Source of the DNA: Neoechinorhynchus agilis
Taxonomy: Eukaryota; Animalia; Acanthocephala
Direction: 5' to 3'
Length of the DNA stretch: 64,000 bases
Assembly (NCBI GenBank): GCA_051530055.1
Contig: CM121341.1
Location: forward strand, 9,464,784 to 9,528,783
Positions 2,033 to 58,599 of this stretch are shown here, piece by piece; position 1 is the first letter of the stretch, and every line of letters starts with the position of its first letter. Below the pieces are notes generated by a model. It worked only from the letters and a program-made list of their open reading frames with translations. It was not told the DNA's origin and did not search any database. Both the position numbers and the translations under genes were made by a program.

Positions 2033-4151
2033 TATTCTCAATGGCGAATTGTAACACACTCGAGCTTTATTATTGAAATCAATCTTGCGAATTTTCAAGG
2101 TCTCAGCCTCCTCCCAGAGTATCTAAAAATGGACGTGAGCCTTGACTCGAGTGCGCAGGACCGTCGATTCCCGAGGTGATATTCACCCCCTGCGCAAAAG
2201 ACAAATAGAGATTCCTCGTCGGAAATCTTAGAGAATGATTGCTCTTGTTCCCTTCCATTGTGTCCTCCATATCAATGAGCAGAGCCTCGTTTATCAACCT
2301 GCTCTGTTGGTTCCTCTCGGCCATCATTGTAAACGCGTTTTCAAAATCGATTCTGTGGTCGTTGTTGATAGCGTGATTGAACAAAGCTGATGACACGTCA
2401 CCTCGTCGTAGCGGATACTCATGTTTCTCTACTCTTTTTCGCATCCCCTGTTTTGTCTGTCCAACATTGACTTGGTCGCAATCCTTACAGTTTATCGAAT
2501 ATACCACGCATCTCCGTAAGCTGTGATGGTCTCACTTTCAGTATCCCGCTCAGTTTGAGTCCTGACGAATAGTAGGGAACCAGATTCGTCGAACTCGGCT
2601 TTGTAAAAATGGGTGTCAGCATGTTACCCATCCTCGTTGAGATGAACTGAACTCGAATGAATTTCTTCTTTAAACCGTCTCTAACATCACTTTTCGTCGT
2701 GGTCTTCACTCGAGCCAATGCCTTCCTTATAGAATATGTCGCGTACTCAAGGTCCTGAAGTTTTACAAAGATGCTCTCAATGTCCTTCCTCACCTTTTGA
2801 TCATTGTTTACGATCTTTATGACTCGCTTGAGGATGTTTGCTACAGCATTGATTTTGTACTTGGCAGGTCCGTGGCGGGTTTACTTGGCTTATTGAATAA
2901 CGACGTCGTGATCAAGGTTCCTTGTTGTTGTATCAACACATCTAAGAAGCTGATCCTTCCCTGCTCGTCCTTTGGGGTGATGCTCCACTTTATCAACGGA
3001 TTTATTCCGTTCAATTGATCCCCTAACTTCATTTTAATAGGATCCTTGTTAGTCACTGCAAACACATCGTCAACGTACCTCCACCACGCCACAATCACAG
3101 GAAACCTCAATCTCAGTTGCTTCTCATATTCGATCATATAGATGTTGGCCAACGCTGGTCCTAACGGTGATCCCATTACAAATCCGTTCGTCTGGTCGTA
3201 GAATTTTCCTTCGAATGAGAACCCAGACTTCGACGTGCAATGATCAATCAGTACTGACCAATCATCCATATCCAGCTTGGGATCCAAACATCGTGCGGCC
3301 AAGATAGTTGCTTCCTTTATCGGTACGTTCGTAAATAGTGCCGTGAATCTGCCGTCCAAAGGAAGTTGTTGCGAGGATCGAATATTCCGATTGCTTCAAC
3401 GAATGGCGGGCCATCTTTAACGTATGATGCTGGAGTTTCCATGTTATCCCGAATTAGTGTGTTAATATCCTTTGCTAACTTGTGGCCAAACAAAGAGTAA
3501 GACGCCAGTGATCGGTCTGACCTTCAGAAATGGTTTGTGGACCTCTGGTAGCAGGTACATGAAGCCCGGCTCCGCATTAGAAGATCTTATTCTCGCATAC
3601 CAGTTTTGGGTAATTTTCCCGGCCAATTTAAAACCGCTCAAGTAACTGTTAAATCCACGTTCTCTTATCGAAGTTGGATCCTTCTTAAATTATTGGAATT
3701 GGTTTGCTTTCGATATATCCATACCCACCTCCATATAGTCCGTTGTGTTTAGCATGACTAATGTTTTCCCTTTGTCCGCTCGGCATGCTCTTATAGTTTT
3801 GTCCTCTTTCAATACTTTCAACGCATGCTTTTCCTCCTTTGACATATTGTCCTTATTCCAGTTATTCTCTCTCAAAGCCATTTCGTCGTAGTGAACGATA
3901 TCACAGAACATCTCGTCTTCCACTCTTTAATCATTGCCTCGGTGTATGCTTCGCCTTAAGAATCTGATATCCTTGGAATCAAACGTTCTTGTTAACCATT
4001 CCCAGATACTCCTCCTCGGGAATCGACGGTCCCGCGCACCCGAGTCAGGGCTACCAACTTTAAGATGCTTGCGAAGGAGGCTGAGACCTTGAAAATTCGC
4101 AAGATTGATTTCAATAAAACTCGAGTGCGTTACAATTCGCCATTGAGAATA
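2033..4151 (-). mobile_element. Penelope-like element (RT + GIY-YIG), frameshifted, bounded by inverted pLTR copies
   Basis: ADKG motif (3690-3923); RT motifs ALFTNVP, GFVMGSPLGPALANIYM and RYVDDVF (2841-3359); GIY-YIG VYSINCKDC..VGQT (2103-2507). 2033-2176 is the reverse complement of 4014-4151. Confidence 0.9.
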
Positions 4152-4790: not shown

Positions 4791-5149
4791 AGATCTTTTT
4801 CGCTGTCTGGGGTGGTGCGGTAGGGAAAGGGTATTTCCCCTTTGCTTCCCCGAATCCCTTGGAATCCGCTTCTGGTCGATATAATACCTAAGTACCAAAA
4901 TCCGATATTTCGGCACAGTCTTGTACACGTTTTATGAAGGTTGCTTGTAGTGTTCAGTTTCGAATCCGAACATTCTCTGATGGAACAAAATTCGACTTAT
5001 CTCTTGACTTCATTGATGCAGACAAAAAAGATTCTTATGTTGGATACAATGAAGTTCCAATAACCACAAAGTTCTTCGTTGTCCTTTGTTCTCTTGTATT
5101 TACTGCTTTTCTACTGAACGGGATCGTATCGCTTCTGTTCTCAATCGGT

Positions 5150-7413: not shown

Positions 7414-7694
7414 GGCTGTTTTATGGCGAAGAAATTAAAATGATTTTGTTTTAAAATCCGGTATTTCGGAGGCACTACCTTGTACGCGTTTATGGAGGTT
7501 GTAAATTGTTTCGAGATCAAATTGAAAGTTATAAAGATCGATTTTCGCTAACGATCTCTCACTGTGAAAAATACCTTTATAACTTTCAATTTGATCTCGA
7601 AACAATTTACAACCTTGATAAACGCGTACAAGATGATGCCGAAATATCGGATTTAAAAATAAAATCATTTTAAATTCTTCGCCGTAAAACAACC
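7414..7694. mobile_element. MITE / foldback element with ~130 bp imperfect terminal inverted repeats
   Basis: ggctgttttatggcgaagaaattaaaatgatttt... pairs with ...aaaatcattttaaattcttcgccgtaaaacaacc. The same terminus recurs at 1917, 13650, 17535 and ~26740-26790. Confidence 0.8.
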
Positions 7695-8211: not shown

Positions 8212-8235
8212 TGAACACGTGACGTCACGTGTTCA
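8212..8235. promoter_or_regulatory. Perfect 24 bp palindrome: CRE flanked by two overlapping E-boxes
   Basis: tgaacacgtgacgtcacgtgttca, ~225 bp upstream of the ATG at 8461. Function is inferred. Confidence 0.55.
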
Positions 8236-8460: not shown

Positions 8461-10020
8461 ATGACATCGTCTCTCACTACCGCCTACAACTGCAGTGCAA
8501 AATTCAAAATGAACGAAGTGAGTCTTGTCGAACTAAAGAGGAAAATGCCGCATACGGAATTGCAAAAAGGACCAACAATCTTATACACTGTACCAAATGA
8601 TCGTGAAGATTTGATGTTTCCTGGTGCAACGGCTCGCATTTTTGGAAGTGGGAAAGTCGTCGTAAATGTACAAAGCGAAGTACAAGACGGAGCAAAGTTA
8701 TTTTCTAATCATGTTGCTGAACTCATTGGTAACATTTGCCTCAGAGCCGGACAAATGAGCGATTATTCGATTACAAATATCGGATTGAATATAACTTTAA
8801 AATATTGCGTTGACCTTGACTTGTTATTTAACAATTGGGAAGCAATGAAGTTGCCAGATTTGAGGAAAACTGTAAAGCGGGTATATTATTATCCAGAGTT
8901 CTCCAAAGTCGGAGAAATTTGGTTTAGGGAATCAAGCGTAAAAATCACTGCTCATGGCAATGAAATGCTCCAACTTTCGGGTACAAGCGCCGAGGAGATG
9001 ATGGAGAAATTTAAAATAGTTGAACCCCTGCTAGAAATTTCGAAGAAAACAAACAAACCCGCGAGATCTTCCAGTAAACCCAGAAAACGTACAGCTGATG
9101 TTGAACTTTCGGATAAATCAGTAGTAGCTGAACCAAAGAGAAGGTTAACGGAACACGAAACGACCGCAAAAGACGAGCAACATCAGAATGAAACTGAAGT
9201 GAAACGTTCACGTCCTGATCGTAACGATCCCGATAGGTCAGTTCAGCGAGTTTCATCGTATGGCGTTTCCACTGGATCAACTCAATGGCCATTGGTTCAA
9301 ATGGGACAATCCTTCTCCCAACAGCAGCAAATAAATCGCAGCCACCAACGATCGATTCAACAACGACACCAAAATGCCAATACGAGTGTTCAATCTAACT
9401 ACATGGCGTCTATACCATCGTACGGTGAAAGTTTTGTTCAACCAATGAGCAGTCAACAGGAAGTTCCGTTGGATCTGTCGATGCCGCGAGGACGCTATCC
9501 AATACAACAAGACAACCGAGGAAATGCCTACTCGCAGCATTCTTACCAATTGCAAAGGTATCCGCAAACGTGGACCCCTTACGATTTGATTGCGGTTCAA
9601 CCTCAGGCGCAACCCATGAGCAATGCCTATAACAATTTCCAAGGAACTTCATTATCGACCTCTAATGAGTACGTCTATCGACCAGGATATTCCCGAATGA
9701 TAAATCAATCGGTGCCAAATAGTATGGAAGTTTATCCTGGAGGATATTACGCCGAAAGGCCCTATATTAATGAACGTTTTCCACAGCTACTATATCATCG
9801 AGGAAACCAATCCAATCCATCGAGAATGGTACATAACCTTCAAAACTATTACGATGGAGCACGATGGAGTTCGCAACAACCGAATAATTTTCAAGGAATT
9901 CCTCAGTTTCCTACACGAATGGAAATGCCGCAAGGAACAAATTATCGAATGGCTTACAATCCTAATGCGCTGGTCCCACGCAGCCATCAACGACGTACCA
10001 GAAACCGATCACGTCGTTAA
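8461..10020 (+). CDS. Divergent TBP-family (TRF2/TBPL1-like) protein, 519 aa, with C-terminal Q/N/Y/S/P-rich low-complexity tail
   Basis: Repeat 1 ATARIFGSGKVVV resembles TTALIFSSGKMVC. DYSITNIGLNITLKYCVDLDLL resembles [22 protein letters not shown]. YYPEF...LQLSGTSAEEMMEKFKIVEPLL resembles YEPELF...[22 protein letters not shown]. The ORF is uninterrupted. Confidence 0.8.
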   Translation: MTSSLTTAYNCSAKFKMNEVSLVELKRKMPHTELQKGPTILYTVPNDREDLMFPGATARIFGSGKVVVNVQSEVQDGAKLFSNHVAELIGNICLRAGQMSDYSITNIGLNITLKYCVDLDLLFNNWEAMKLPDLRKTVKRVYYYPEFSKVGEIWFRESSVKITAHGNEMLQLSGTSAEEMMEKFKIVEPLLEISKKTNKPARSSSKPRKRTADVELSDKSVVAEPKRRLTEHETTAKDEQHQNETEVKRSRPDRNDPDRSVQRVSSYGVSTGSTQWPLVQMGQSFSQQQQINRSHQRSIQQRHQNANTSVQSNYMASIPSYGESFVQPMSSQQEVPLDLSMPRGRYPIQQDNRGNAYSQHSYQLQRYPQTWTPYDLIAVQPQAQPMSNAYNNFQGTSLSTSNEYVYRPGYSRMINQSVPNSMEVYPGGYYAERPYINERFPQLLYHRGNQSNPSRMVHNLQNYYDGARWSSQQPNNFQGIPQFPTRMEMPQGTNYRMAYNPNALVPRSHQRRTRNRSRR

Positions 10021-10849
10021 TAGGAATCGTTTATATGCTGCAAATTAATTCGATTTGTTTGACGCCACTAATCGAATATTTTCAACTAAGTGCATTTAGC
10101 AAAGGACATTTCCGATTTTTGAAAGACGAACGTCCTGTGGAAATTAAGGAGATTACGACTGTTTTGGTTGTCGTGGAAGATAAATTATGGGAGGAATCGA
10201 TATAAGTTTTCGATCGGCAATGGTAAGAACGAATTTTGAGTTATGAATTGGTATGGATCAGAGACAATTGGATGAGCCGATTTACGGTATAATGATGTAG
10301 GGACTCGGTGATAACTTTATATTTGTTTCGGAAGGAAAATTGTGTTTAATGTGGAAAAACTATGTGGTTGTCTTTTATGGCTTTTCGGGCGCCTATTTAA
10401 TTGCGCATAGTCAAAGAAGTTAGGGATTCGGTTACTATTCGAGTTTTTAGGGTGTGAAATATGTTTTAGGGTATTAAAGATTTATGTCGCGATTACGGGG
10501 TTCAAAAGGTAAAATTTATGGCGCGGGGTGTTTCAAATGATAATTAAACTTAAACACACCTTTATTATCCAGTCTATAATCACTTAAAGTCTCTACTTGT
10601 ACTTTCGTTTGATAAAGTTGCCAGTTTTGGAAGCCAATAATAAATTTAATTTCAGTAACGGCTTCGTCCACACCATTTAGCTGGGCCGAGAAGTCTCTAA
10701 ATTCGTAACTTTGATCTTCAGACGTTACTATGATCGATTGCGAAGTTTGACACGTTAAATAGGGCTTCAGTCCAGGGTGAAACTGCATTAAAGTTACAAA
10801 TCAACGAGCATTGCCCCTAAAATCAAGTGGTGGAGGCTAAAGGATCCTA

Positions 10850-13620: not shown

Positions 13621-13869
13621 ATAGCCTTGAAAATTGAATTGTTCATATAGGTTGTTTTCTGGCGTAGAAATCAAAATGATTTTAATTTTTGTGGTGAGTG
13701 ACAAATCGATACGGTATTTAAATGTAAAACGGAGATCGATAATTCACTCACTACACAAAGCGCCAGTGCAGGACTCACTTCCAAAGACGATAATGGCGAA
13801 TTGAGAATTTCCGCAAAAAAATTTGCGATTCTCTTTTTTCTGAAATCCGGGGAGGGACTTTTAATCAAA

Positions 13870-17534: not shown

Positions 17535-17772
17535 TTGTTTTCTGGCGGAGAAATTAAAATGATTTTATTTTAAAATCCGATATTTCAGCACAATATTGTG
17601 CCAAGCAACCTTAATAAAACGCATACAAGACTGTGCCGAAATATCGCATTTTGGTACTTAGGTATTATATCGTTCGTGTCTGCGTTTTTAAATTCTGGCA
17701 TTTCATGACAAGAATCGTTTTGCGAAATTTCAGAACTTAACAACAGCAAAATAAATCTATTCAAGGCAACTA
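17535..17772. repeat. Composite copy of the MITE terminus plus dispersed repeat
   Basis: The start matches the 7414 TIR; ~17625-17695 is the reverse complement of ~4862-4935; ~17680-17772 is the reverse complement of ~1785-1872. Confidence 0.7.
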
Positions 17773-19384: not shown

Positions 19385-20699
19385 CGTATCGCCGTAACCC
19401 AATACTTCGTCGATGGCTCAGTAGGAACCGCACATTTGGATCGTAAGCTATTTGATAATTTGTTCCTTGCGGCACTTGCATTCGCGTGAATTTTGTTCCT
19501 GTCTTAATAAGAGGAAATTCGGGAATTCTTTGAAAATTATTCGGCTTTTGCTACTCGTACTCACTCCATCGTCGTAATAGTTTTGAAAATTTATGTACTA
19601 TTCTCGATTGATTGAAACGGTTTCCTCGATGATTTAGTCGCTGTGTAAGACATTCATTAACATAAGAAGTTTCTGTGTAGTATCCTCCAGGATAAACTTC
19701 CATACTATTTGGCATCGATTGATTTGTCGATAATGAAGTTCCTTGGAAATTGTTGTTGACATTGCTCATGGGTTGCGCCTGAGGTTGAATCGTAATTAAA
19801 TCGTAAGGGGTCCACGTTTGCGGATACCTTTGGAATTGGTAAGAATGCTGCGAGTAGGCATTCGCTTGGTTGTCTTGTTGTACTGGACAGCGTCCTCGCG
19901 GCATCGATAGATCTAACGGAACTTCCCGTTGACTGCTCATTGGTGAAACAAAACTTCCACCGTACGCTGGTCAAGACGTCATGTAGTCAGATTGAACACT
20001 CGTATTGGAACATTGCTCGATCGTTGGTGGCTTCGATTTATCTGCTGTGGTTGGGAGAAGGATTGTCCCATTTGAACCAATGGCCATTGAGTTGATCCAG
20101 TGGGAACGCCATACGATGAAACTCGCTGAACTGACCTATCGGGATCGTTACGATCAGGACGTGAACGTTTCACTTCAGTTTCATTCTGATGTTGCTCGTC
20201 TTTTGCGGTCGTTTCGTGTTCCGTTAACCTTCTCTTTGGTTCAGCTACTACTGATTTATCCGAAATTTCAACATCAGCCGTACGTTTTCTGGGTTTACTG
20301 GAAGATCTCGCGGGTTTGTTTGTTTTCTTCGAAATTTCCAGCAGGGGTTCCACTATTTTAAATTTCTCCATCATCTCCTCGGCGCTTGTACCCGAATGTT
20401 GGAGTATTTCATTGCCATGAGCGGTGATTTTTACGCTTGATTCCCTAAACCAAATTTCTCCGACTTTGGAGAACTCTGGGTAATAATATACCCGCTTTAC
20501 AGTTTTCCTCAAATCTGGCAACTTCATTGCTTCCCAATTGTTAAATAACAAGTCAAGGTCAACGCAATATTTTAAAGTTATATTCAATCCGATATTTGTA
20601 ATCGAATAATCGCTCATTTGTCCGGCTCTGAGGCAAATGTTACCAATGAGTTCAGCAACATGATTAGAAAATAACTTTGCTCCGTCTTGTACTTCGCTT
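19385..20699 (-). pseudogene. 5'-truncated, frameshifted inverted copy of the TBP-like gene
   Basis: Reverse complement of ~8674-10000. It lacks the first ~70 codons; the core is nearly identical, while the tail is much more diverged and frameshifted (ORFs 19979-20617 and 19551-19940). Confidence 0.9.
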
Positions 20700-20767
20700 G
20701 CTGTCGTTGAACAGGGGGTTGAATCGATCGTTGGTGGCTGCGATTTATTTGCTGCTGTTGGGAACCG

Positions 20768-27979: not shown

Positions 27980-28039
27980 GTTTCTATCCCTCCATTTTTA
28001 GTTATCAATAGGGAGAACGATAGAAATAAGATAACTTTT

Positions 28040-28520
28040 ATCCTGACATCACTTTGTCCTTATTGGCCTCATTATTTTATTTTAGTTTCAGACTTCTAAA
28101 TATTGAATGTTACATTAATTTAATATCATATTCTTCCGTGTAAATCACTGGAAAGACGATAATAATAAAGTAATTTTTATCGTGACGTCACTTTGTCCTT
28201 TATTGGCCTCATTATTTTATGTTAGTTACAGACTCTTCTAAATATTGAATGTTACATTAATTTAATATCATATTCTTCCGTGTAAATCACTTGAAAAACG
28301 CTGCAAATAAAATAATTTTTATCCTAACGTCACTTTGTCCTTTATTGGCCTCATTATTTTATGTTAGTTTCAGATTCTTTTCTAAATATTCACCATTAAA
28401 TTCATTTAGTATAAAATTCTTCCGTGTAAATCACTTGAAAAACGATGCAAATAAAATAATTTTTAACCTGAAGTCACTTTGTCCTTTATTGGCCTCATTA
28501 TTTTATGTTAGATTCCGATT
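28040..28520. repeat. Tandem array, ~143 bp monomer (~3.3 copies)
   Basis: ttccgtgtaaatcac recurs at 28134, 28276 and 28420; same family as 35490-36575. Confidence 0.92.
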
Positions 28521-28898
28521 CATTGGATTCTCGGGGGGTTTGCAAACGTTTATAAAAAATCTCTTAACCCTAAATTGCTTTTGCAGTTTAAAGAAGACTA
28601 TCTTGCTGTACAAATTTTTCCGTAGACAATTTTTTAACGTTTAAGGACCCTAAATTGATTTTATGCAATCTCTACATCCCCCAAGAAAAGTGAACAAATT
28701 TTTGAAAGAGGAAAGACAATTGATAATAGACTAGAATCCTGACATAATTTTAGGAGACTAACTCCGATTCGCTTACAGCGTTTGAAAAATGGTCAAACGT
28801 TTTTAATTTCTAAGTCCTTTCCCTCCTTCCACAATTATGCGAAAAATGCACACTTTTACCTAGATGCTTGCCTGATTTAAAAAGAATTTAATATTTCC

Positions 28899-35489: not shown

Positions 35490-36575
35490 GTTATCGGCCT
35501 CATTATTTTATGCTAGTTTCAGATTCGCTTCTAAATATTGGATGTTACATTAATTTAACATCATATTCTTCCGTGTAAATCACTGGAAAAACGATAATAA
35601 TAAAGTAATTTTTATCGTGACGTCACTTTGTCCTTATTGGCCTCAGTATTTGATGTTAGATTCCGATTCTTTTCTAAATATTGAATGTTACATTAATTTA
35701 ACATCATATTCTTCCGTGTAAATCACTGGAAAAACGATAATAATAAAATAATTTTTATCGTGACGTCACTTTGTCCTTATTGGCCTCATTATTTTATGTT
35801 AGTTTCAGATTCTTTTCTAAATATTCACCATTAAATTCATTTAATATCGAATTCTTCCGTGTAAATCACTGGAAAGACGATAATAATAAAGTAATTTTTA
35901 TCCTGACGTCACTTTGTCCTTATTGGCCTCATTATTTTATGTTAGATTCCGATTCTTTATCTAAATATTGAATGTTACATTAATTTAATATCACATTCTT
36001 CCGTGTAAATAACTGGAAAGACGATAATAATAAAGTAATTTTTATCCTGACGTCACTTTGTCCTTTATTGGCCTCATTATTTTATGTCTTTTTCATAATC
36101 TTTTCTAAATATTCACCATTAAATTCATTTAGTTTAAAATTCTTCCGTGTAAATCACTGGAAAAACCATAATAATAAGGCAATTTTTATCGTGACGTCAC
36201 TTTGTCCTTATTGGCCTCAGTATTTGATGTTAGATTCCGATTCTTTTCTAAATATTGAATGTTACATTAATTTAACATCATATTCTTCCGTGTAAATCAC
36301 TGGAAAAACGATAATAATAATAAGGTAATTCTTTTCCGTGACGTCACTTTGTCCTTATTGGCCTCATTGTTTTATGCTAGTTTCAGATTCGCTTCTAAAT
36401 ATTGGATGTTACATTAATTTGATATCATATTCTTCCGTGTAAATCACTTGAAAAACGATGCAAATAAAATAATTTTTATCCTAACGTCACTTTGTCCTTT
36501 ATTGGCCTCATTATTTTATGTTAGTTTCAGATTCTTTTCTAAATATTCACCATTAAATTCATTTAATATCGAATT
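35490..36575. repeat. Tandem array, 143-147 bp monomer (~7.5 copies), two subtypes
   Basis: ttccgtgtaaat at 35569, 35712, 35855, 35999, 36143, 36286 and 36433. Confidence 0.95.
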
Positions 36576-36659
36576 CTGGTGTAAGTGCGGTAGATCAAAC
36601 TGTTTCGGATGTTCTCGGAGTGAATTTTTCGATCTTATCGTTGAGCTTCTTTGAAAGTA

Positions 36660-41502: not shown

Positions 41503-43480
41503 TTAATCGTTATCGACTCAATCGGTAATGCGAAATTTTTTATTTTTCTTATCTATAAACGCGAATAAAATGTAATCAGCGCTAAAAATAAACTTTCCCG
41601 GTTTTGTTATAAGACAAATTCCGGAATCGAAGCCTTAAACGTTTTAAGGCCCCACAAATTCTATATTCAGCACAAGAGCTAAAAATCTAATGCTAATTTG
41701 TAGAAATTTGGGCTACAAAAATTACCAAAATAAATCGATTTAGGAGAGGTTCATTTAGGATGCATCCATGGTTTTTGAAGGCGATATCTATCGGCGTTTT
41801 TAAAAACTTTTTAATCGTTATCGACTCAATCGGTAATGCGAAATTTTTTATTTTTCTTATCTATAAACGCGAATAAAATGTAATCAGGGTTAAAAATAAA
41901 CTTTCCCGGTTTTGTTATGAGACAAATTCCGGAATCGAAGCCTTAAACGTTTTAAGGCCCCACAAATTCTATATTCAGCACAAGCCTAATGCTAAAAATC
42001 TAATGCTAATTTTAGAAATTTAAGCTACAAAAATAAACAAAATAAATCGATTTAGGAGAGGTTCATTTAGGATGCATCCATGGTTTTTTGAAGACGATAT
42101 CTATCGGCGTTTTTGAAAAACTTTTTAATCGTTATCGACTCAATCGGTAATGCGAAATTTTTTATTTTTTCTTATCTATAAACGCGAATAAAATGTATTT
42201 AAACTTTCCCGGTTTTATTATGCAAATGCCGGAATGGAAGCTTTAAGCGGTTTGAGGCCCCACAAATTCTATATTCAGCACAGGAGCTAAAAATCTAATG
42301 CTAATTTGGCGAAATTTAAGCTACAAAAATTAAATCGATAACAGAGGTTCATTTAGGATGAAGGCGATATCTATCGGCGTTTTTAAAAACCTTTTAGTCG
42401 TAATCGACTCAATCGGTAATGCGAAATTTTTTATTTTTCTTATCTATAAACGCGAATAAAATGTAATCAGGGCTAAAAATAAACTTTCCCGGTTTTATTA
42501 TGAGACAAATGCCGGAATGGAAGCTTTAAGCGGTTTGAGGCCCCACAAATTCTATATTCAGCACAGGAGCTAAAAATCTAATGCTAATTTGTAGAAATTT
42601 AGGTTACAGATATGAAATAAATAAATCAATTTAGGACAGGTTCATTTAGGATGCATCCATGGTTTTTGAAGGCGATATCTATCGGCGTTTTTAAAAACCT
42701 TTTAGTCGTTATCGACTCAATCGGTAATGCGAAATTTTTTATTTTTCTTATCTATAAACGCGAATAAAATGTAATCAGCGCTAAAAATAAACTTCCCGGT
42801 TTTATTATGAGACAAATTCTGGAATCGAAGCCTTAAAAGTTTTGAGGCCCCACAAATTCTATATTCAGCACAAGAGCTAAAAATCTAATGCTAATTTGTA
42901 GAAATTTGGGTTACAAAAATTACCAAAATAAATCAATTTAGGAGTGGTTCATTTAGGATGCATCCATGGTTTTTGAAGACGATATCTATCGGCGTTTTTA
43001 AAAACTTTTTAGTCGTTATCGACTCAATCGGTAATGCGAAATTTTTTATTTTTCTTATCTATAAACGCGAATAAAATGTAATCAGGGCTAAAAATAAACT
43101 TTCCCGGTTTTGTTATGAGACAAATGCCGGAATGGAAGCTTTAAACGGTTTGAGGCCCCACAAATTCTGTATTCAGCACAGGAGCTAAAAATCCAATGCA
43201 AATTTGTAGAAATTTAGGCTACAAAAATTACCAAAATAAATCGATTTAGGAGAGGTTCATATAGGATGCATCCATGATTTTTGAAGACGATATCTATCGG
43301 CGTTTTTGAAAAACTTTTTAATCGTTATCGACTCAATCGGCAATGCGATAATTCTTATTTTTTCTTGTCTAAAAACGCGAATAAAATGTAATCAGGGCTA
43401 AAAATAAACTTCCCCGGTTTTGTTATAAGACAAATGCCGGAATCGAAGCTTTAAACGGTTTGAGGCCCCACAAATTCTAC
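41503..43480. repeat. Tandem array, ~308 bp monomer (~6.5 copies)
   Basis: Unit starts at 41503, 41811, 42125, 42394, 42702, 43009 and 43318. Confidence 0.97.
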
Positions 43481-43573
43481 ATTCGTCTCAGCAGATGTTA
43501 ATGCGATTTAATTGCCATATCAAACTGCCATCCATGGTCTTTCACTCAATATTGATGGACCGGCAAAGTCAAA

Positions 43574-46792: not shown

Positions 46793-47347
46793 CTACGGTT
46801 TTTCATTTTTCTCCGAAGTAGCCTCTTGTGCAGGTCCCATCGCCATTCGCTCCCTTGCACATTTGGCCATGTAGTCATCCAATTGTTTGTCGAGGAACTC
46901 CAATGTCACTCGAGGACGTTTTCTGATCGGAAAATTGTTTCGTTCCCGTAACTCTCTTTTTCGAAATCGCTTCCTTCTATTGAATTCTGGCGACCACGGT
47001 CTTGTTTCACGCTCTTGGCGATTGTCCTGTCTTGTTTCCTGCCAGTAATTTCGATATCTTTGATAATTTCGGTTGTGTGATGATGGTCGATAATTAGAAT
47101 TTCGATTGGCTCTCCATTGAGGTTCATAAAAATTACTTTCATTATCTTGCCGTCGCTGGCTAACATTTCGTGAGTGCCATGTTGAATGATCGCCTCGACG
47201 CTCGAAAACTGGCATTTGATTTCGGTCTCTGTTTCGTGTTTGGTGATATTTTGTTGATTGTTGATGAGTTTCGATTCGATTTGAACGTGGCCAAGACTGT
47301 TTTGATCTCTTGAAGATTGGTGAGTGATCACTGATCCGTCGTTGCAT
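46793..47347 (-). CDS. Arg/Gln/Asn-rich 184 aa protein with C-terminal UAP56-binding-motif-like helix (ALYREF/CHTOP/UIF-like, no RRM)
   Basis: RPRVTLEFLDKQLDDYM resembles the xxEELDxxLDxYM UBM/FoP motif; preceded by a low-complexity R-rich region; intact ORF. Confidence 0.65.
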   Translation of the reverse strand: MQRRISDHSPIFKRSKQSWPRSNRIETHQQSTKYHQTRNRDRNQMPVFERRGDHSTWHSRNVSQRRQDNESNFYEPQWRANRNSNYRPSSHNRNYQRYRNYWQETRQDNRQERETRPWSPEFNRRKRFRKRELRERNNFPIRKRPRVTLEFLDKQLDDYMAKCARERMAMGPAQEATSEKNEKP

Positions 47348-49640: not shown

Positions 49641-49649
49641 ACTGAGACG

Positions 49650-51688
49650 AATGTAGAATTTGTGGGGCCTCAAACCGTTTAAAGCTTCGATTCCGGCATT
49701 TGTCTTATAACAAAACCGGGGAAGTTTATTTTTAGCCCTGATTACATTTTATTCGCGTTTTTAGACAAGAAAAAATAAGAATTATCGCATTGCCGATTGA
49801 GTCGATAACGATTAAAAAGTTTTTCAAAAACGCCGATAGATATCGTCTTCAAAAATCATGGATGCATCCTATATGAACCTCTCCTAAATCGATTTATTTT
49901 GGTAATTTTTGTAGCCTAAATTTCTACAAATTTGCATTGGATTTTTAGCTCCTGTGCTGAATACAGAATTTGTGGGGCCTCAAACCGTTTAAAGCTTCCA
50001 TTCCGGCATTTGTCTCATAACAAAACCGGGAAAGTTTATTTTTAGCCCTGATTACATTTTATTCGCGTTTATAGATAAGAAAAATAAAAAATTTCGCATT
50101 ACCGATTGAGTCGATAACGACTAAAAAGTTTTTAAAAACGCCGATAGATATCGCCTTCAAAAACCATGGATGCATCCTAAATGAACCACTCCTAAATTGA
50201 TTTATTTTGGTAATTTTTGTAACCCAAATTTCTACAAATTAGCATTAGATTTTTAGCTCTTGTGCTGAATATAGAATTTGTGGGGCCTCAAAACTTTTAA
50301 GGCTTCGATTCCAGAATTTGTCTCATAATAAAACCGGGAAGTTTATTTTTAGCGCTGATTACATTTTATTCGCGTTTATAGATAAGAAAAATAAAAAATT
50401 TCGCATTACCGATTGAGTCGATAACGACTAAAAGGTTTTTAAAAACGCCGATAGATATCGCCTTCAAAAACCATGGATGCATCCTAAATGAACCTGTCCT
50501 AAATTGATTTATTTATTTCATATCTGTAACCTAAATTTCTACAAATTAGCATTAGATTTTTAGTTCCTGTGCTGAATATAGAATTTGTGGGGCCTCAAAC
50601 CGCTTAAAGCTTCCATTCCGGCATTTGTCTCATAATAAAACCGGGAAAGTTTATTTTTTGCCCTGATTACATTTTATTCGCGTTTATAGATAAGAAAAAT
50701 AAAAAATTTCGCATTACCGATTGAGTCGATTACGACTAAAAGGTTTTTAAAAACGCCGATAGATATCGCCTTCAAAAGCCATGGATGCATCCTAAATGAA
50801 CCTCTCCTAAATCGATTTATTTTGTTTATTTTTGTAGCTTAAATTTCTACAAATTAGCATTAGATTTTTAGCTCGTGTTCTGAATATAGAATTTGTGGGG
50901 CCTCAAACCGCTTAAAGCTTCCATTCCGGCATTTGTCTCATAATAAAACCGGGAAAGTATATTTTTTGCCCTGATTACATTTTATTCGCGTTTATAGATA
51001 AGAAAAATAAAAAATTTCGCATTACCGATTGAGTCGATAACGATTAAAAAGTTTTTCAAAAACGCCGATAGATATCGTCTTCAAAAAACCATGGATGCAT
51101 CCTAAATGAACCTCTCCTAAATCGATTTATTTTGGTAATTTTTGTAGCTTAAATTTCTACAAATTAGCATTAGATTTTTAGCTCTTGTGCTGAATATAGA
51201 ATTTGTGGGGCCTTAAAACGTTTAAGGCTTCGATTCCGGAATTTGTCTTATAACAAAACCGGGAAAGTTTATTTTTAGCGCTGATTACATTTTATTCGTG
51301 TTTATAGATAAGAAAAATAAAAATTTCGCATTACCGATTGAGTCGATAACGATTAAAAGTTTTTCAAAAACGCCGATAGATATCGTCTTCAAAAAACCAT
51401 GGATGCATCCTAAATGAACCTCTCCTAAATCGATTTATTTTGTTTATTTTTGTAGCTTAAATTTCTACAAATTAGCATTAGATTTTTAGCTCTTGTGCTG
51501 AATATAGAATTTGTGGGGCCTTAAAACGTTTAAGGCTTCGATTCCGGAATTTGTCTTATAACAAAACCGGGAAAGTTTATTTTTAGCGCTGATTACATTT
51601 TATTCGCGTTTATAGATAAGAAAAATAAAAAATTTCGCATTACCGATTGAGTCGATAACGATTAAAAAGTTTTTCAATAACGCCGTCG
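49650..51688. repeat. Tandem array, ~308 bp monomer (~6.6 copies), inverted relative to 41503-43480
   Basis: The gagtcgataacga(t/c)taa motif ends at 49815, 50124, 50431, 50739, 51047, 51356 and 51665. Confidence 0.97.
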
Positions 51689-55479: not shown

Positions 55480-58400
55480 AAAATCCTCCGCTTTGTGGTA
55501 TTAATTCAAAATTGTTTTGTATTCGATTTGTCGCTAACAGCAATTGGGCTTTTAAATATGTTGATTGCACTATCGTTTGCTTTCTCGTATGTTTCGGAGA
55601 ATTTTTAATTATTCTTTATTTTAAAATGTATCTTCATTTTTATCCATACAAACCGCTCCAACATATTGATTCCTGATAGGAAAACCCCTTCTTCAATTTT
55701 AGAAATGAGTCTCAACGCCAATATTCGTACTGTGATAACTAACCTCGTCGCTGCCTCCGTATCTCCGACATGTAAGCTACGCCGCAATATCCGAACTTGG
55801 ATTTCTATTAATGATCCAAATGCTGTTTATAAAATAATGGAGGACATTTGTTTTCAAATTGAAAACACCGTAAATGAACAAAATCCACCTGAAGATTTTT
55901 TTATGCTTGGAAAAAAACCAAGCGAAATGAAAAAGTTTTTAGAGAATTACTTTAAGATGGCAATTAAACCATTAGAACTATTGGGGCGCGCTTCCTTGAT
56001 TTTGAGCTTTTACTGCTACGGACTGTCAACGCCTTCTGTAAGTGAATTCTTTTTACAAATGTGTACACGATTGAACCAGAGCGACCAAACGACACTCACT
56101 TGCCTTTTGTCAGCATTGTTGTTCGATGGAGACAAAGACCGGAAAACAACAATAAACAATATCCTTGCAAGTGAAGGCGAAAGCCCATACGATAAAAATT
56201 GCATTTACTCATCCTTGTCGGATCTGATGGCTGCTATTCAGAACAGCGAAAATGGTCAATTTGCTCAGCTAGAGAAACCAAAAGAAACAAAGGAAACTGA
56301 GCATTCAAATGGCAAGGGAAGCAACGACGGCAAGAAAGAGTCAATTAAAAGTCCCGACGTATTAAATGGCACACAATGTATTGAAAACGGAGGCGATCCG
56401 CTAGGAAAATATGAATCGGATGACGAGCCTTTCGGTTGGAGTAAGCATATAGAAGGGGCTTCCAAGAGAACAAACAACAAAAATGTAAATATAGATAATT
56501 TTCGAAAACAAGAAACAAAGCCTCAAACGGAAAGTCGATTGTCCCCTATCCGAGATATTGATTCCCAATGCAAAATGCTAAAGGAGGAGCTAAGTGAGAA
56601 GGAAAAGCTGCTAGAGGACACGAATCGCAGGCTAAAAGAAATATCCGTGCAAAACGATGAATTAAACGCACAAATTGTAAAGCTGAGAATGATCACGAGA
56701 AAAATAGAAAACGATTTTGAGGAAAGGGACAAAAAGTGTTCAGACCAAAATATGAGGATTATAAAGTTAGCAAAACAGAATGCTAACCTGAAGGAGGATC
56801 TAAGACTCGCGAAAAGTACGAATGCTGATTTATCGAAAAAAGAAAATGAGCTTAAATCGTTCGCAGAAGACGCGCAAGAGGAGGTGATGAAATTGAAGGA
56901 ATACCAAAAGGAAATTTTAGAAAGTTTGAATGAGAAAGAGAATCGTTTGATTGACAACAAACGCAGACTGAAGGAGGTATCAAATCAAAACAATGACCTT
57001 AATGCTAAAATTTCAGTACTGACTAAAAAGCAAAAAATTAATGAATATGAAATTGAGCAGAAAAACAAGAAGTGTGAAACGCTATCTTCAGAATTAGAGG
57101 AAATGACGAAGGAAAATCAGGATTTAAAAACGAAACTTTCGTCTGCTCAGCGAGAAAAGGAAATCGATTTGTCAAAAACGGAACGGGAGATGCAATGTCG
57201 TATTGATGAAAGCCAGCGGAAAATAATTAATCTTGAGAGATCCCTTAAATTGGCAAATGAGAAATTTGATGCGAAAGTACAAGGTTCATCGGAAACGGAA
57301 AAACATTTAGAAAAGGTTATAAAGCGGAATGAAGAAATGGCTGTCGAATGCAAGGCTAACGGTCAACTCATAAATGACCTAAGGGCTAAATTAAATCAAC
57401 TAAAGGAAATCAACGACCAAAATGAAATTGAAAGGAAATCGAGAGATCGGCAAATTGCAGAAGTTGAAGCTAAATTGAAAGCAGAAATAGACATGACCGC
57501 AAAAAGAGTAGAACAGTTTTCACAGAAGGAAATAAAATGGAAAACTGATAAGCAATCACTTGAACTAAAACTTCAAAACATTATGGGAAAACTGGAACAT
57601 TTGGAACAGTCGAGGAATTTAGAGGAAAATACACGACTTATGGAAAGCAAAGAAGAAAATCTGAGACTTGAGGGTTGCTTGGGAAATGCTAAATCTGAGA
57701 TCTGTGATCTCAAAACAAAATCGGAATCTCTTAATAAGGAATTAAGAGAGAAGAACACGAAACTAGCAGAAAGTTCCATGAAGTTAGAAAATCTCCTTGT
57801 GCAAAATGGAGAATTATTAGAAAAAGTGGAAACCATTCAAAGGAAGTTTGATTGCGCTTTAAGCGAAAATCAAAATCGTTCAATAATTATTCAGACGCAA
57901 GACAGTGAAATTAGCAAATTGAAGGCGGAACTTCGTGAAAACGTTTCGGTTTACGCTCACGAGCAATGGGAAATGATGAAGAAGTTAAATGATCAAATGA
58001 TTGAAGAACTAAAGAAGAACAAACTTGAGAAAAACAAGCTTCTAAAAAGGAACAAAGATTTGGAAGATCATGTTGGCCGCTATACAAGAAAGGTGACAGT
58101 CTTGGAGCAATCACAAGAAGAAATAAAGTCCCAAATGTGCAAGCAAACAAAGGATTTTGAAGATGCGAATAATCGTGCACAACATAGACTCAGGCTATTT
58201 GAACGGACGATACGCCATCTTTTAAATAGAAGAGTAGAAAACTCAGAAACAGATAAACTAAGAGGTGACGATCCAGTTGGTACGAATATGCCATTTTCGA
58301 ACATCGCCGGGCAAACTTTGGGTCCTAAGAGCACTACAACATTGCCAAAAAAAATCAATTGTATGTTAGATGAAGATCAGAACACAACTTCATTGGAAAA

Positions 58401-58599
58401 CCACTCTACACTTTCAAAAGGAGAAAAAAGAACGCCATTTCCGCGTCCTCAAAGAAAGATCACAGCCATTGGTACACCTTCTAAACCTCCAAAACCGTCA
58501 CTATTCGAAGATCAATATCTCACGAATGCTTTAAATACATGCAGAGAACTGAATGCGATAGCGGATGCATTCGATGCGATTCGTCCGGGTAAAAATTAG
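55444..58599 (+). CDS. Long coiled-coil protein (977 aa ORF from 55666; likely extra hydrophobic first exon 55444-55586)
   Basis: 2.9 kb open frame, E/K/L-rich heptads over ~550 aa and a Pro-rich C-terminus. A gtatgt..ag intron at 55587-55679 joins in frame. Several differences from the 54 kb copy are synonymous in this frame. Confidence 0.8.

Follow-up and report, generated by a model that had tools for sequence, protein, structure and literature searches.

Introduction

The TBP paralogues TRF1, TRF2 and TRF3 are the standard case of the "general" transcription machinery diversifying, often for germline programmes. In canonical TBP, the four intercalating phenylalanines are present and the low-complexity region lies N-terminal to the core. 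The closest described system to the gene reported here is TRF2 (TBPL1, TLF), in which the two-lobe TBP-like core has lost most of the TATA-intercalating phenylalanines; in invertebrate TBPL1s, a basic patch and then a C-terminal extension come after this core. The loss of Phe at the intercalating positions has been tied to lost TATA binding (PMC4422821; PMC4180970). The TRF2 signature of Duttke et al. 2014 consists of an altered F193, Trp in place of F210, His in place of F284 and a retained F301 (PMC4180970). The roles of the stirrup residues, the TFIIB-contacting Glu and the Phe, have been described (PMC7221094; PMC4180970).

The lineage of the acanthocephalan Neoechinorhynchus agilis has shed much of its transcription-regulatory apparatus, for example Mediator and NELF subunits; transcription factors are outside the scope of that report (PMC12256650). 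A TBP-family gene or locus tag is not mentioned in the N. agilis genome/transcriptome paper or in one supplement, and a literature search on "TRF4/TRF5" as TBP paralogues returned unrelated poly(A) polymerases only. Here, a 519-aa TBP-like protein encoded in a 64,000-nt stretch of N. agilis DNA (the window) was compared with these systems.

Results

Gene structure

The 519-aa ORF is real, runs from ATG to stop in one exon, and is as an earlier sequence-only reading of the window had described it (Table 1). It stands in the ORF list, and an in-frame TAG lies two codons 5' of the ATG. Window 9979-30816, read in reverse, corresponds to the locus L004, at the end of which the 519-aa gene was called. 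The protein has a three-part layout with a core of residues 1-197, a charged linker and a low-complexity tail. The alternative gene model P0006, in which 5' exons are spliced in at codon 13, was disfavoured. Because M1-S12 of the window protein align well with strand S1 of TBP and of the related N. agilis protein P0004, and because the full ORF of the copy L003 is intact from M1, M1 appears to be the likelier start.

Table 1. Features of the 519-aa gene and its surroundings in window coordinates.
Feature	Position	Strand	Basis or remark
Perfect 22-nt palindrome GAACACGTGACGTCACGTGTTC, CRE core between two E-boxes	8213..8234	.	227-248 bp 5' of the ATG
Single-exon CDS, 519 aa + stop	8461..10020	+	Annotated 519-aa gene on N. 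agilis chromosome CM121341.1; exact product present in protein collection
N-terminal TBP-like lobe, aa 1-96	8461..8748	+	Pfam aa 10-83, AF2, alignment to TBP/P0004
8-residue insertion N46-F53, S3-S4 turn of lobe 1	8596..8619	+	Relative to TBP, TBPL1, P0004
F61 codon (N.L5.1, human F210), sole intercalating Phe kept	8641..8643	+	Alignments
C-terminal TBP-like lobe, aa 97-197	8749..9051	+	Gapless BLASTP to P0004 lobe 2, AF2, Foldseek
11-residue insertion, H1'-S2', aa about 131-141, in F-N-N-W-E-A-M-K-L-P-D-L	8851..8883	+	Alignments
C-terminal stirrup Y144-P-E146-F-S148, counterpart of TBP E-P-E-L-F	8890..8904	+	Alignments
H165 codon, equivalent to human F301 (C.L5.1)	8953..8955	+	Alignments
Charged linker, aa 198-262, basic clusters KPRKR ... 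KRR	9052..9246	+	Composition
Low-complexity tail, aa 263-519, Q/S/R/N/P/Y-rich, ending RSHQRRTRNRSRR	9247..10017	+	Composition
Inverted 5'-truncated second copy, aa 72-511	19403..20699	-	Alignments; gene model P0003 covers part

The TBP-like core

The two-repeat TBP-like core, which the sequence-only reading had placed at about residues 1-197, was borne out by the Pfam and PDB matches, the alignment with P0004 and the AlphaFold model. The sole Pfam match of the 519-aa protein was TBP (PF00352), in one stretch over aa 10-82/83 of lobe 1, scoring 16.6 bits (E=0.0073) with the full protein and 19.6 bits (E=0.0008) with the core alone. The profile check returned the expected family beneath its curated gathering threshold of 22.9 bits, with one repeat in place of two, lobe 2 being undetected by Pfam. 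All 17 matches of the PDB sequence search were TBPs, with the best E-value of 0.008. The very high core conservation of canonical TBP was not found, the window protein scoring about 23 bits with human TBP compared with 289-363 bits for canonical TBPs, microsporidian ones included, and about 120 bits for archaeal TBPs. The identity to TBPL1s was only ~15-19%.

The MSA-based AlphaFold (AF2) model of the core reached a pLDDT of 82.2, but the underlying MSA was dominated by TBPL1 sequences, so that the fold was partly imposed. Lobe 2 was modelled with the highest confidence (pLDDT above 90). In Foldseek against PDB, the top 44 matches of the AF2 model were all TBP (E down to 6e-12). Superposition on solved TBPs resulted in TM-scores of 0.70-0.85 (TMq 0.70-0.75) and rmsd values of 2.3-3.3 Å over ~198 columns; the TM-score with 1cdw and 1vol was about 0.75. 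An alignment-free core model had a pLDDT of 40, yet its top 42 structure matches were only TBPs. The core is therefore predicted to adopt two pseudo-symmetric S1-H1-S2-S3-S4-S5-H2 lobes arranged as a saddle, in agreement with the fold proposed before. Canonical TBP also shares the lobe-1 FxSGK motif and, in lobe 2, the central Asn (N106).

In lobe 1 of the AF2 model, the secondary structure elements were E2-11, H22-28, E32-43, E57-61, E65-71 and H75-92. Strand S1 begins at residue 2-5, which leaves the protein without an N-terminal extension. The 8-residue insertion of lobe 1 falls in the loop 44-56 of the model, its exact gap position varying between the alignments A1 and A5. The 11-residue insertion of lobe 2, modelled with a short helix at 132-136, is present in P0004 and missing from human TBP and 23 TBPL1 sequences.

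Relationship to P0004

P0004 (ACOME3_006278; KAL7667466.1/KAL7671379.1) is encoded on CM121342.1, a chromosome other than that of the window. With the Pfam TBP profile it scored 94.9 bits with two repeats. When 1.84 billion representative proteins were searched exhaustively with phmmer, P0004 was the sole match besides the family's own copies (E=1.3e-5), the alignment spanning query residues 52-193 against 197-337 of P0004. BLASTP aligned query residues 54-194 with an E-value of 1e-14, lobe 2 being gapless; the identity was 25% over 141 residues covering both lobes. The alignments with P0004 show statistically significant homology to a bona fide TBP-family member across both lobes, and this bridge secures the homology of the weakly scoring window protein to the family.

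P0004 scored 105-131 bits with TBPL1s and 85 bits with human TBP. Its residues at the four Phe positions, S/Y/H/F, largely fit the TRF2 signature, with the TRF2-type residues at F284 (His) and F301 (Phe). Like the window gene, P0004 is intronless, and its lobe-2 insertion shares the W-E-x3-L-P motif. In contrast to the window protein, it has a 155-aa N-terminal extension with the core at the very C-terminus, keeps YEPE and the C-lobe Phe, and passes the Pfam TBP threshold.

In the neighbour-joining tree, the window protein paired with the TRF2-like P0004 with a bootstrap of 0.94, calculated from columns without the shared 11-residue insertion, although this grouping may be inflated by long-branch attraction. 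The window protein is very probably a TBP-family paralogue related to P0004. Any affiliation to TBPL1 over TBP is indirect, via P0004 only (57 bits); the direct scores were equal (23.1 bits with the best TBPL1 and 23.1 bits with human TBP). A profile-profile comparison with a TBPL1-only alignment resulted in a probability of 11%, with lobe 1 cross-matched to lobe 2; the query profile was effectively one sequence. The word-index search with P0004 alone retrieved only P0004 itself; getting beyond it took a mixed profile with TBPL1 as bait.

No relatives outside N. agilis were found across about 15 billion proteins. The view of a lineage-specific TBP paralogue is thereby supported, its relatives occurring in N. 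agilis alone with P0004 as the nearest, and as far as public data show, the paralogue appears to be restricted to this species.

Intercalating phenylalanines and TFIIB-contact residues

According to the alignments, F193, F210, F284 and F301 of human TBP correspond to K36, F61, S148 and H165, leaving one of the four Phe. The assignment of K36 is uncertain, but no aromatic residue is nearby. The earlier count of one remaining intercalating Phe, with Ser and His in repeat 2, therefore held. The residue after F61 is G62 in the window copy and R62 in both other intact copies and in P0004. At the F301 position, the otherwise universal C-lobe Phe, kept in TBP, TBPL1 and P0004, is replaced by His.

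The TRF2 signature of Duttke et al. 2014 was not matched, as only the first position of K/F/S/H fits it. The comparison with TRF2/TBPL1 made in the sequence-only reading is apt with regard to the lost Phe residues (PMC4180970, PMC4422821), but the pattern is opposite: TRF2 has x/W/H/F, whereas the window protein has kept the N-lobe Phe and lost the C-lobe Phe.

In the C-terminal stirrup, the window motif YYPEF stands against YEPEL. Tyr replaces Glu C.L3.2 and Ser stands at the F284 equivalent; Glu C.L3.4 is retained. The conserved TFIIB-contact Glu pair of TRF2/TBPL1 (C.L3.2 and C.L3.4) is thus incomplete in the window protein, with one of the two kept. The Tyr at C.L3.2, the lobe-1 insertions and the missing N-terminal extension further distinguish the protein from TRF2/TBPL1.

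Linker and C-terminal tail

The composition confirmed a basic/acidic linker followed by a Q/N/Y/S/P/G-rich stretch. The 65-aa linker contains 16 K/R and 13 D/E and aligns with the post-core basic patch of invertebrate TBPL1s; its basic clusters form a candidate bipartite nuclear localisation signal.

The tail consists of 14% Q, 12% S, 9% R, 9% N, 9% P and 8% Y, and Q+N+S+Y+G+P amount to 56.8%. There are 30 aromatics in its 257 residues, 24 Arg and 0 Lys, and the C-terminus is Arg-rich. The tail had no Pfam family match and no homologue outside N. agilis. By the Michelitsch-Weissman criterion, a Q/N-rich prion-like domain reportedly contains at least 30 Q/N per 80-residue window. The tail reached at most 23 per 80 aa (from aa 287), with Q+N at 22.6% overall, and the label "prion-like" was overstated by this measure. 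In composition it seems closer to a Tyr/Arg "sticker" low-complexity region than to a Q/N prion-like domain. FET/hnRNP-type Tyr/Arg low-complexity domains are a compositional analogue, and by composition alone they share the regularly spaced aromatics, Arg without Lys and the Q/S/G/P-richness; unlike in FET/hnRNP-type systems, RGG/RRM modules are missing from the window protein, as is sequence homology.

The "reversed architecture" noticed earlier holds relative to TBP but not against invertebrate TBPL1s, which also carry C-terminal tails, of 60-100 aa after the core. The TBPL1 tail is short and acidic, whereas 322 residues follow the core of the window protein. Unusual in this protein are the missing N-terminal extension and the C-terminal extension of about 320 aa.

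Copies, duplication and selection

The gene is part of recent segmental duplications, which comprise three intact and two truncated or degenerate copies. Divergence among the intact 519-aa copies (window, L003 and L001) is only 1-3%, and some of them may be haplotypes that were left uncollapsed; the loci concerned are those at 9.31 Mb and 9.48 Mb and contig JBMGUZ010000099.1. The inverted second copy in the window is probably a pseudogene: its core part is 98% identical, and the tail, at 63% identity, carries a frameshift and stops. In the copy L002, the core contains stops and 332 tail codons are open (P=0.0026 if all divergence occurred on the L002 lineage, about 0.06 if half). A second, identical copy of P0004 was found on an unplaced contig.

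An origin as a retrocopy or mobile element was considered, as the copies seemed to have a common 3' end at window 10475 and variable 5' ends, and was rejected. The apparent end is a ~145-bp indel relative to L003, beyond which homology resumes, and a poly(A) tract was not found. Intron content does not tell retrogene origin here, because P0004 is also single-exon. The copies arose at the DNA level, by segmental duplication with rearrangements.

Unique changes among the three intact copies were mostly synonymous in the core (1 non-synonymous, 5 synonymous; P=0.0019 against neutrality), whereas 14 non-synonymous and 3 synonymous ones were counted in the tail (Fisher's test for the contrast, p=0.0086). 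The omega of the tail was about 0.8-2 between copies. This pattern indicates purifying selection on the core and neutrality of the tail at the residue level between recent copies. In a neutral simulation, about 5.5 stops appeared in 328 tail codons at 11% divergence.

Discussion

The best explanation overall, with a probability of about 0.6, is that the window gene encodes a fast-evolving TBP-family paralogue derived from a TRF2-like gene and acting as a TATA-independent, partner-recruited transcription factor. It would have originated by duplication of the acanthocephalan TRF2/TBPL1-like gene represented by P0004, followed by amplification through recent segmental duplication. The gene is regarded as functional because of the three intact 519-aa copies and the purifying selection on the core. 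Given K/F/S/H at the four Phe positions and the literature on Phe loss, the protein, like TRF2, would not recognise the TATA box. After nuclear import via the basic linker, it could be recruited via protein partners and multivalent Tyr/Arg tail contacts rather than by sequence-specific DNA bending. Its role might then be that of an alternative factor at the core promoter or in the pre-initiation complex; it could also compete with TBP/TRF2 for their partners. TATA-independent, partner-dependent recruitment is what would be expected by analogy with TRF2 (PMC4422821, PMC4180970); taken by itself, the partner-tethered, TATA-independent role in transcription is put forward only tentatively. Judging from the other TBP paralogues, a specialised programme such as that of the germline seems likely. 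With Glu C.L3.2 gone and the N-lobe loops remodelled, TFIIB and TFIIA may be left unbound altogether, which would weaken the case for a pre-initiation-complex role.

The TBP fold could instead have been repurposed beyond transcription initiation, as an RNA-binding or condensate scaffold via the Tyr/Arg/Gln-rich tail or as a decoy for TBP/TRF2 partners. Both C-lobe hallmarks are gone (Phe C.L5.1 to His and Glu C.L3.2 to Tyr) and the tail has a FET/hnRNP-like composition; moreover, the tail of L002 has stayed open next to a destroyed core and is joined to an RRM-containing protein in the gene prediction P0002 (ACOME3_003313). This chimera is a prediction only, and the window protein has no RNA-binding domain in Pfam. 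As selection is seen on the core and not on the tail residues, and as the basic linker resembles the post-core patch of TBPL1, such repurposing is considered unlikely.

A decaying or drifting duplicate of a TRF2-like gene, with no function of its own and an ORF open through youth or chance, would account for the extreme divergence from all TBP-family members (23 bits to TBP and TBPL1), the repeat-rich rearranged region with its adjoining truncated and degenerate copies, and the tail omega. The long branch, however, points to an origin so old that an ORF free of constraint would have gained stops since then, the simulation giving the scale, and real decay is visible in the core of L002 and in the tail of the second copy. 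With 519 codons intact in three copies and the core under purifying selection, decay is quite improbable.

Highly speculative is a promoter-scaffolding factor rebuilt from a TBP fold in this reduced lineage, with the C-lobe DNA-kinking Phe and a TFIIB salt-bridge Glu lost and a FET-like Tyr/Arg tail gained. Initiation hubs would be nucleated by the tail and not by DNA bending, and an RRM gene would have captured the same tail as a portable module, as in the P0002 chimera. It is hardly credible that the orthologue of TRF2 in acanthocephalans is the window protein itself, with P0004 as a highly diverged TBP of the worm. P0004 does have a TBP-type layout, and 45% of the metazoan BUSCO genes are missing from N. 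agilis, as are many transcription regulators. However, P0004 bears the non-Phe F193, His F284 and Phe F301 of TRF2 and scores higher with TBPL1 than with TBP; given the scores of canonical TBPs, there would be no precedent for a TBP at 67-85 bits; and the window protein lacks the TRF2 Phe pattern.

If the paralogue is TRF2-derived, it would add an example from an extremely reduced phylum that has received little attention, that of a duplicate diverged far past any described TRF, with a Phe retention opposite to that of TRF2 and a putative disordered region at the C-terminus. Such paralogues score too low for curated domain thresholds, carry the annotation "hypothetical protein" and can be traced only via a bridging sequence from the same genome. 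If expressed sex- or stage-specifically, the gene could mark a parasite-specific transcription programme; on sequence and model grounds, it is an evolutionary curiosity of moderate interest.

A minor observation concerns the palindrome 5' of the gene, which is missing from L003, where homology begins at window 8264, and is kept in L001. It occurs once in the window against a chance expectation of 0 and is possibly a promoter element.

Homology and predicted fold of the core

The DNA studied comes from Neoechinorhynchus agilis, an acanthocephalan (assembly GCA_051530055.1), and covers about 9.47-9.53 Mb of chromosome CM121341.1; a piece of the CM121341.1 record (L004) equalled window 9979-30816 reversed, with 100% identity. 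The N. agilis genome is very reduced, 46 Mb, and was annotated by BRAKER with mRNA-Seq hints (PMC12690905). The ORF at 8461-10020 (+) was found exactly as described by the sequence-only reading, with 519 codons from ATG to stop and a TAG two codons 5' of the ATG. In the existing annotation it is a 519-aa 'hypothetical protein'.

The sole Pfam match of the window protein was TBP (PF00352) at aa 10-83, with E=0.0073 to 0.0008 and 16.6-19.6 bits, which falls under the Pfam cut-off of 22.9 bits; the search gave no match in residues 101-200 or in the tail. In the PDB sequence search, 17 of 17 matches were TBPs, the best with E=0.008 (query 53-122 vs yeast TBP 48-115). The direct sequence evidence for a TBP core is specific but weak. 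An exhaustive phmmer search of 1.84 billion representative proteins with residues 1-215 as query retrieved copies of the protein's own family and P0004 (ACOME3_006278), and no others. P0004, encoded by the same worm, is an unambiguous TBP-family protein with two repeats and a Pfam TBP score of 94.9 bits. It was matched with E=1.3e-5 and 25% identity by phmmer (query 52-193 vs 197-337) and over 141 residues without gaps by BLASTP (E=1e-14). The homology of the window protein to the TBP family was therefore established via a bridging sequence. The profile-profile comparison of the window family with TBPL1s alone was weak.

The alignment-free structure model of the core was poor (pLDDT 40), its secondary-structure order fitting two beta-alpha-beta4-alpha lobes; the top 42 Foldseek matches were all TBPs, but with a TM of 0.29. 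The model from an alignment of 27 sequences (window family, P0004 and 23 TBPL1s) reached a pLDDT of 82.2 and a pTM of 0.67. It superposed on solved TBPs with TM 0.70-0.75 (0.78-0.85 target-normalised) and rmsd 2.3-3.3 A, and 44 of 44 top Foldseek matches were TBPs. The predicted structure agrees with a TBP core; since TBPL1 sequences dominate the alignment, the model indicates fold compatibility and is not independent proof. The bridged homology together with the predicted fold shows that the window protein belongs to the TBP family.

Relation to P0004 and TRF2

Against human TBP, canonical eukaryotic TBP cores scored 289-363 bits and archaeal ones about 120, whereas P0004 scored 67-85 and the window protein about 23 bits. 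The scores of P0004 with TBPL1/TRF2 proteins were higher, 105-131 bits (31-36% identity), and its residues aligned with the four intercalating Phe are S/Y/H/F, near the TRF2 signature x/W/H/F of Duttke et al. (PMC4180970). P0004 is therefore best read as a fast-evolving acanthocephalan TRF2-like gene.

Lobe 2 of both the window protein and P0004 carries, between H1' and S2', an insertion of 11 residues (…W-E-x3-L-P…) that is absent in human TBP and in 23 of 23 TBPL1 sequences examined. In the NJ tree, whose columns leave out this insertion, the two proteins were grouped at 94% bootstrap, the window branch being about nine times longer. The alignments thus show a specific relationship, and the window protein is most simply a far more divergent duplicate from P0004's lineage. 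Both genes consist of a single exon and lie on different chromosomes, so intron content is uninformative on how the duplicate arose. In current databases the window family is restricted to N. agilis; the proposed lineage-specific TBP paralogue, comparable to TRF2, was borne out in this form.

DNA-contact and TFIIB-contact residues

Human F193, F210, F284 and F301 correspond by alignment to K36 (uncertain), F61, S148 and H165, so that one kinking Phe of four is kept, as in the sequence-only reading. At N-lobe L5.1, TBPL1 has Trp and P0004 has Tyr, but the window protein has Phe. At C-lobe L5.1 it has His, whereas TBP, TBPL1 and P0004 have Phe, described as near-universal (PMC7221094). The C-terminal stirrup reads 'YYPEF' where 'YEPEL' is the usual motif; Glu C.L3.2, which makes a salt bridge with TFIIB (PMC7221094), is replaced by Tyr and Glu C.L3.4 is retained. 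The central Asn of lobe 2 (N106) is invariant. To fit TBP, the alignment also requires about 5 added residues in H1, a shorter N-terminal stirrup and 8 inserted residues in the S3-S4 turn of lobe 1, the gap placement there being uncertain. The alignments show that DNA-kinking and TFIIB-contact residues are altered. The loss of TATA binding has been linked to lost intercalating Phe in TRF2 and some protist TBPs (PMC4422821, PMC4180970), and by analogy we infer that the window protein would not bind TATA.

Linker, tail and possible role

The core starts at residue 2-5, so the protein is without any N-terminal extension. Residues 198-262 are strongly charged (16 K/R and 13 D/E); their basic clusters align with the post-core basic patch of invertebrate TBPL1s and look like a candidate bipartite NLS. 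Residues 263-519 contain Q 14%, S 12%, R 9%, N 9%, P 9% and Y 8%, with 30 aromatic residues, 24 Arg and 0 Lys, and end in RSHQRRTRNRSRR. The usual Q/N criterion for prion-like regions is 30 per 80 residues. The maximum in the tail was 23 per 80, so the term 'prion-like' was overstated; the composition appears closer to Tyr/Arg 'sticker' low-complexity regions. Pfam and protein searches gave no family match of the tail and no homologue beyond N. agilis. Invertebrate TBPL1s have C-terminal tails of their own, acidic and of 60-100 aa, and a post-core extension therefore has precedent in the family. The 'reversed architecture' is true in comparison with TBP only and was thus overstated; the length and composition of the tail and the missing N-terminus are without precedent in the family.

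The window protein could be nuclear and TATA-independent, acting as an alternative initiation factor or competing for the partners of TBP/TRF2. Partner proteins and multivalent contacts of the tail would recruit it, perhaps as part of a specialised (germline) programme like those of other TBP paralogues (PMC4422821); the tethering and the condensates proposed by the sequence-only reading are hypothetical. That a protein with such altered contact residues and such a tail has instead been repurposed as a scaffold or decoy seems rather unlikely.

Copies, duplication and selection

The window gene sits amid repeat-rich, rearranged, recently duplicated DNA (see table).

Copies of the window gene and other features (window positions unless a fetched piece is named)
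Feature	Position	Strand	Description
Window copy	8461-10020	+	intact, 519 aa
L003 copy	L003:11998-13557		CM121341.1, about 170 kb from the window copy; intact, with 97% identity; 5' exons added in NCBI model P0006
L001 copy	L001:3202-4758		unplaced 6.8-kb contig; intact, 98% identical
Copy 2, model P0003	20699-19403	-	5'-truncated at aa 72; tail with frameshift and stops
L002 copy, P0002 / ACOME3_003313	L002:12308-13697		CM121341.1, about 13.97 Mb, a third locus; core with stops and frameshifts
Palindrome GAACACGTGACGTCACGTGTTC	8213-8234		perfect, 22 nt; about 230 bp 5' of ATG; CRE core between two E-boxes; unique in window; kept in L001 (2957-2972); missing from L003 copy, whose homology begins at window 8264
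MITE-like element	7414-7694		about 280 bp; inverted-repeat build, arms 7414-7469 / 7639-7694 and 7471-7536 / 7575-7640
MITE-like fragments	1913-1962, 4898-4943, 13627-13689, 17535-17651, 26741-26790		in L001 too
Inverted repeats	2033-2176 vs 4014-4151		about 140 bp, 90-95% complementary, around about 1.85 kb
Reverse-transcriptase fragment ORF	2841-3359	-	inside 2033-4151; RVT_1 27.5 bits, under cut-off
Satellite, 142-143-bp unit	28016-28521; 35491-36577		3.6 and 7.6 copies
Satellite, 308-bp unit	42359-43484; 49649-51685		3.7 and 6.6 copies; 93-94% matches
184-aa ORF	46793-47347	-	Arg/Asn/Gln-rich; FoP_duplication (Friend of PRMT1/CHTOP-like), 25.8 bits vs cut-off 24.6
977-aa ORF	55666-58599	+	long K/E-rich coiled-coil-like protein; no Pfam match

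Retrocopies were rejected: the seeming common 3' boundary at 10475 is a mere indel and there is no poly(A) tract, so the copies are segmental DNA duplications. Copy 2 was 98% identical to the window gene in the core and 63% in the tail, with dS about 0.05 over aa 72-298 and about 0.15 over aa 304-511; this mosaic points to gene conversion or to a chimeric origin. At the truncated 5' end of copy 2, an insertion of 46 nt (20718-20763) repeats 9316-9361 without a difference. In the L002 copy, 332 tail codons are open although the TBP-like core is destroyed; in neutral simulation the lack of a stop had P=0.0026 with all divergence on the L002 lineage and about 0.06 with half. The annotation P0002, a gene prediction, joins this tail to an RRM_5-containing protein upstream and may represent a real chimeric gene having captured the low-complexity tail.

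L001 combines the flanks of the window copy with those of L003 and is possibly a haplotig, and the P0004 gene is identical on CM121342.1 (L006) and on an unplaced 19-kb contig (L005, JBMGUZ010000054.1). The small unplaced contigs thus appear to be redundant pieces of haplotypes, a point that bears on paralogue counts in the N. agilis assembly.

Among the three intact copies, which are maybe not all independent loci, unique changes were few: 1 non-synonymous and 5 synonymous in the core (P=0.0019 under neutrality) vs 14 and 3 in the tail, which is neutral (Fisher p=0.0086 for the contrast). These counts show purifying selection on the core, the pattern being that of a constrained folded domain and a freely evolving disordered region. 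With the core under selection, it is improbable that the window gene is a duplicate without function. Hardly credible is the window protein itself as the TRF2 orthologue; its Phe pattern differs from that of TRF2/TBPL1.

Elsewhere in the window, 2033-4151 is probably a degraded mobile element, and the 977-aa ORF falls where AT and GC skew is strong (56-58 kb).
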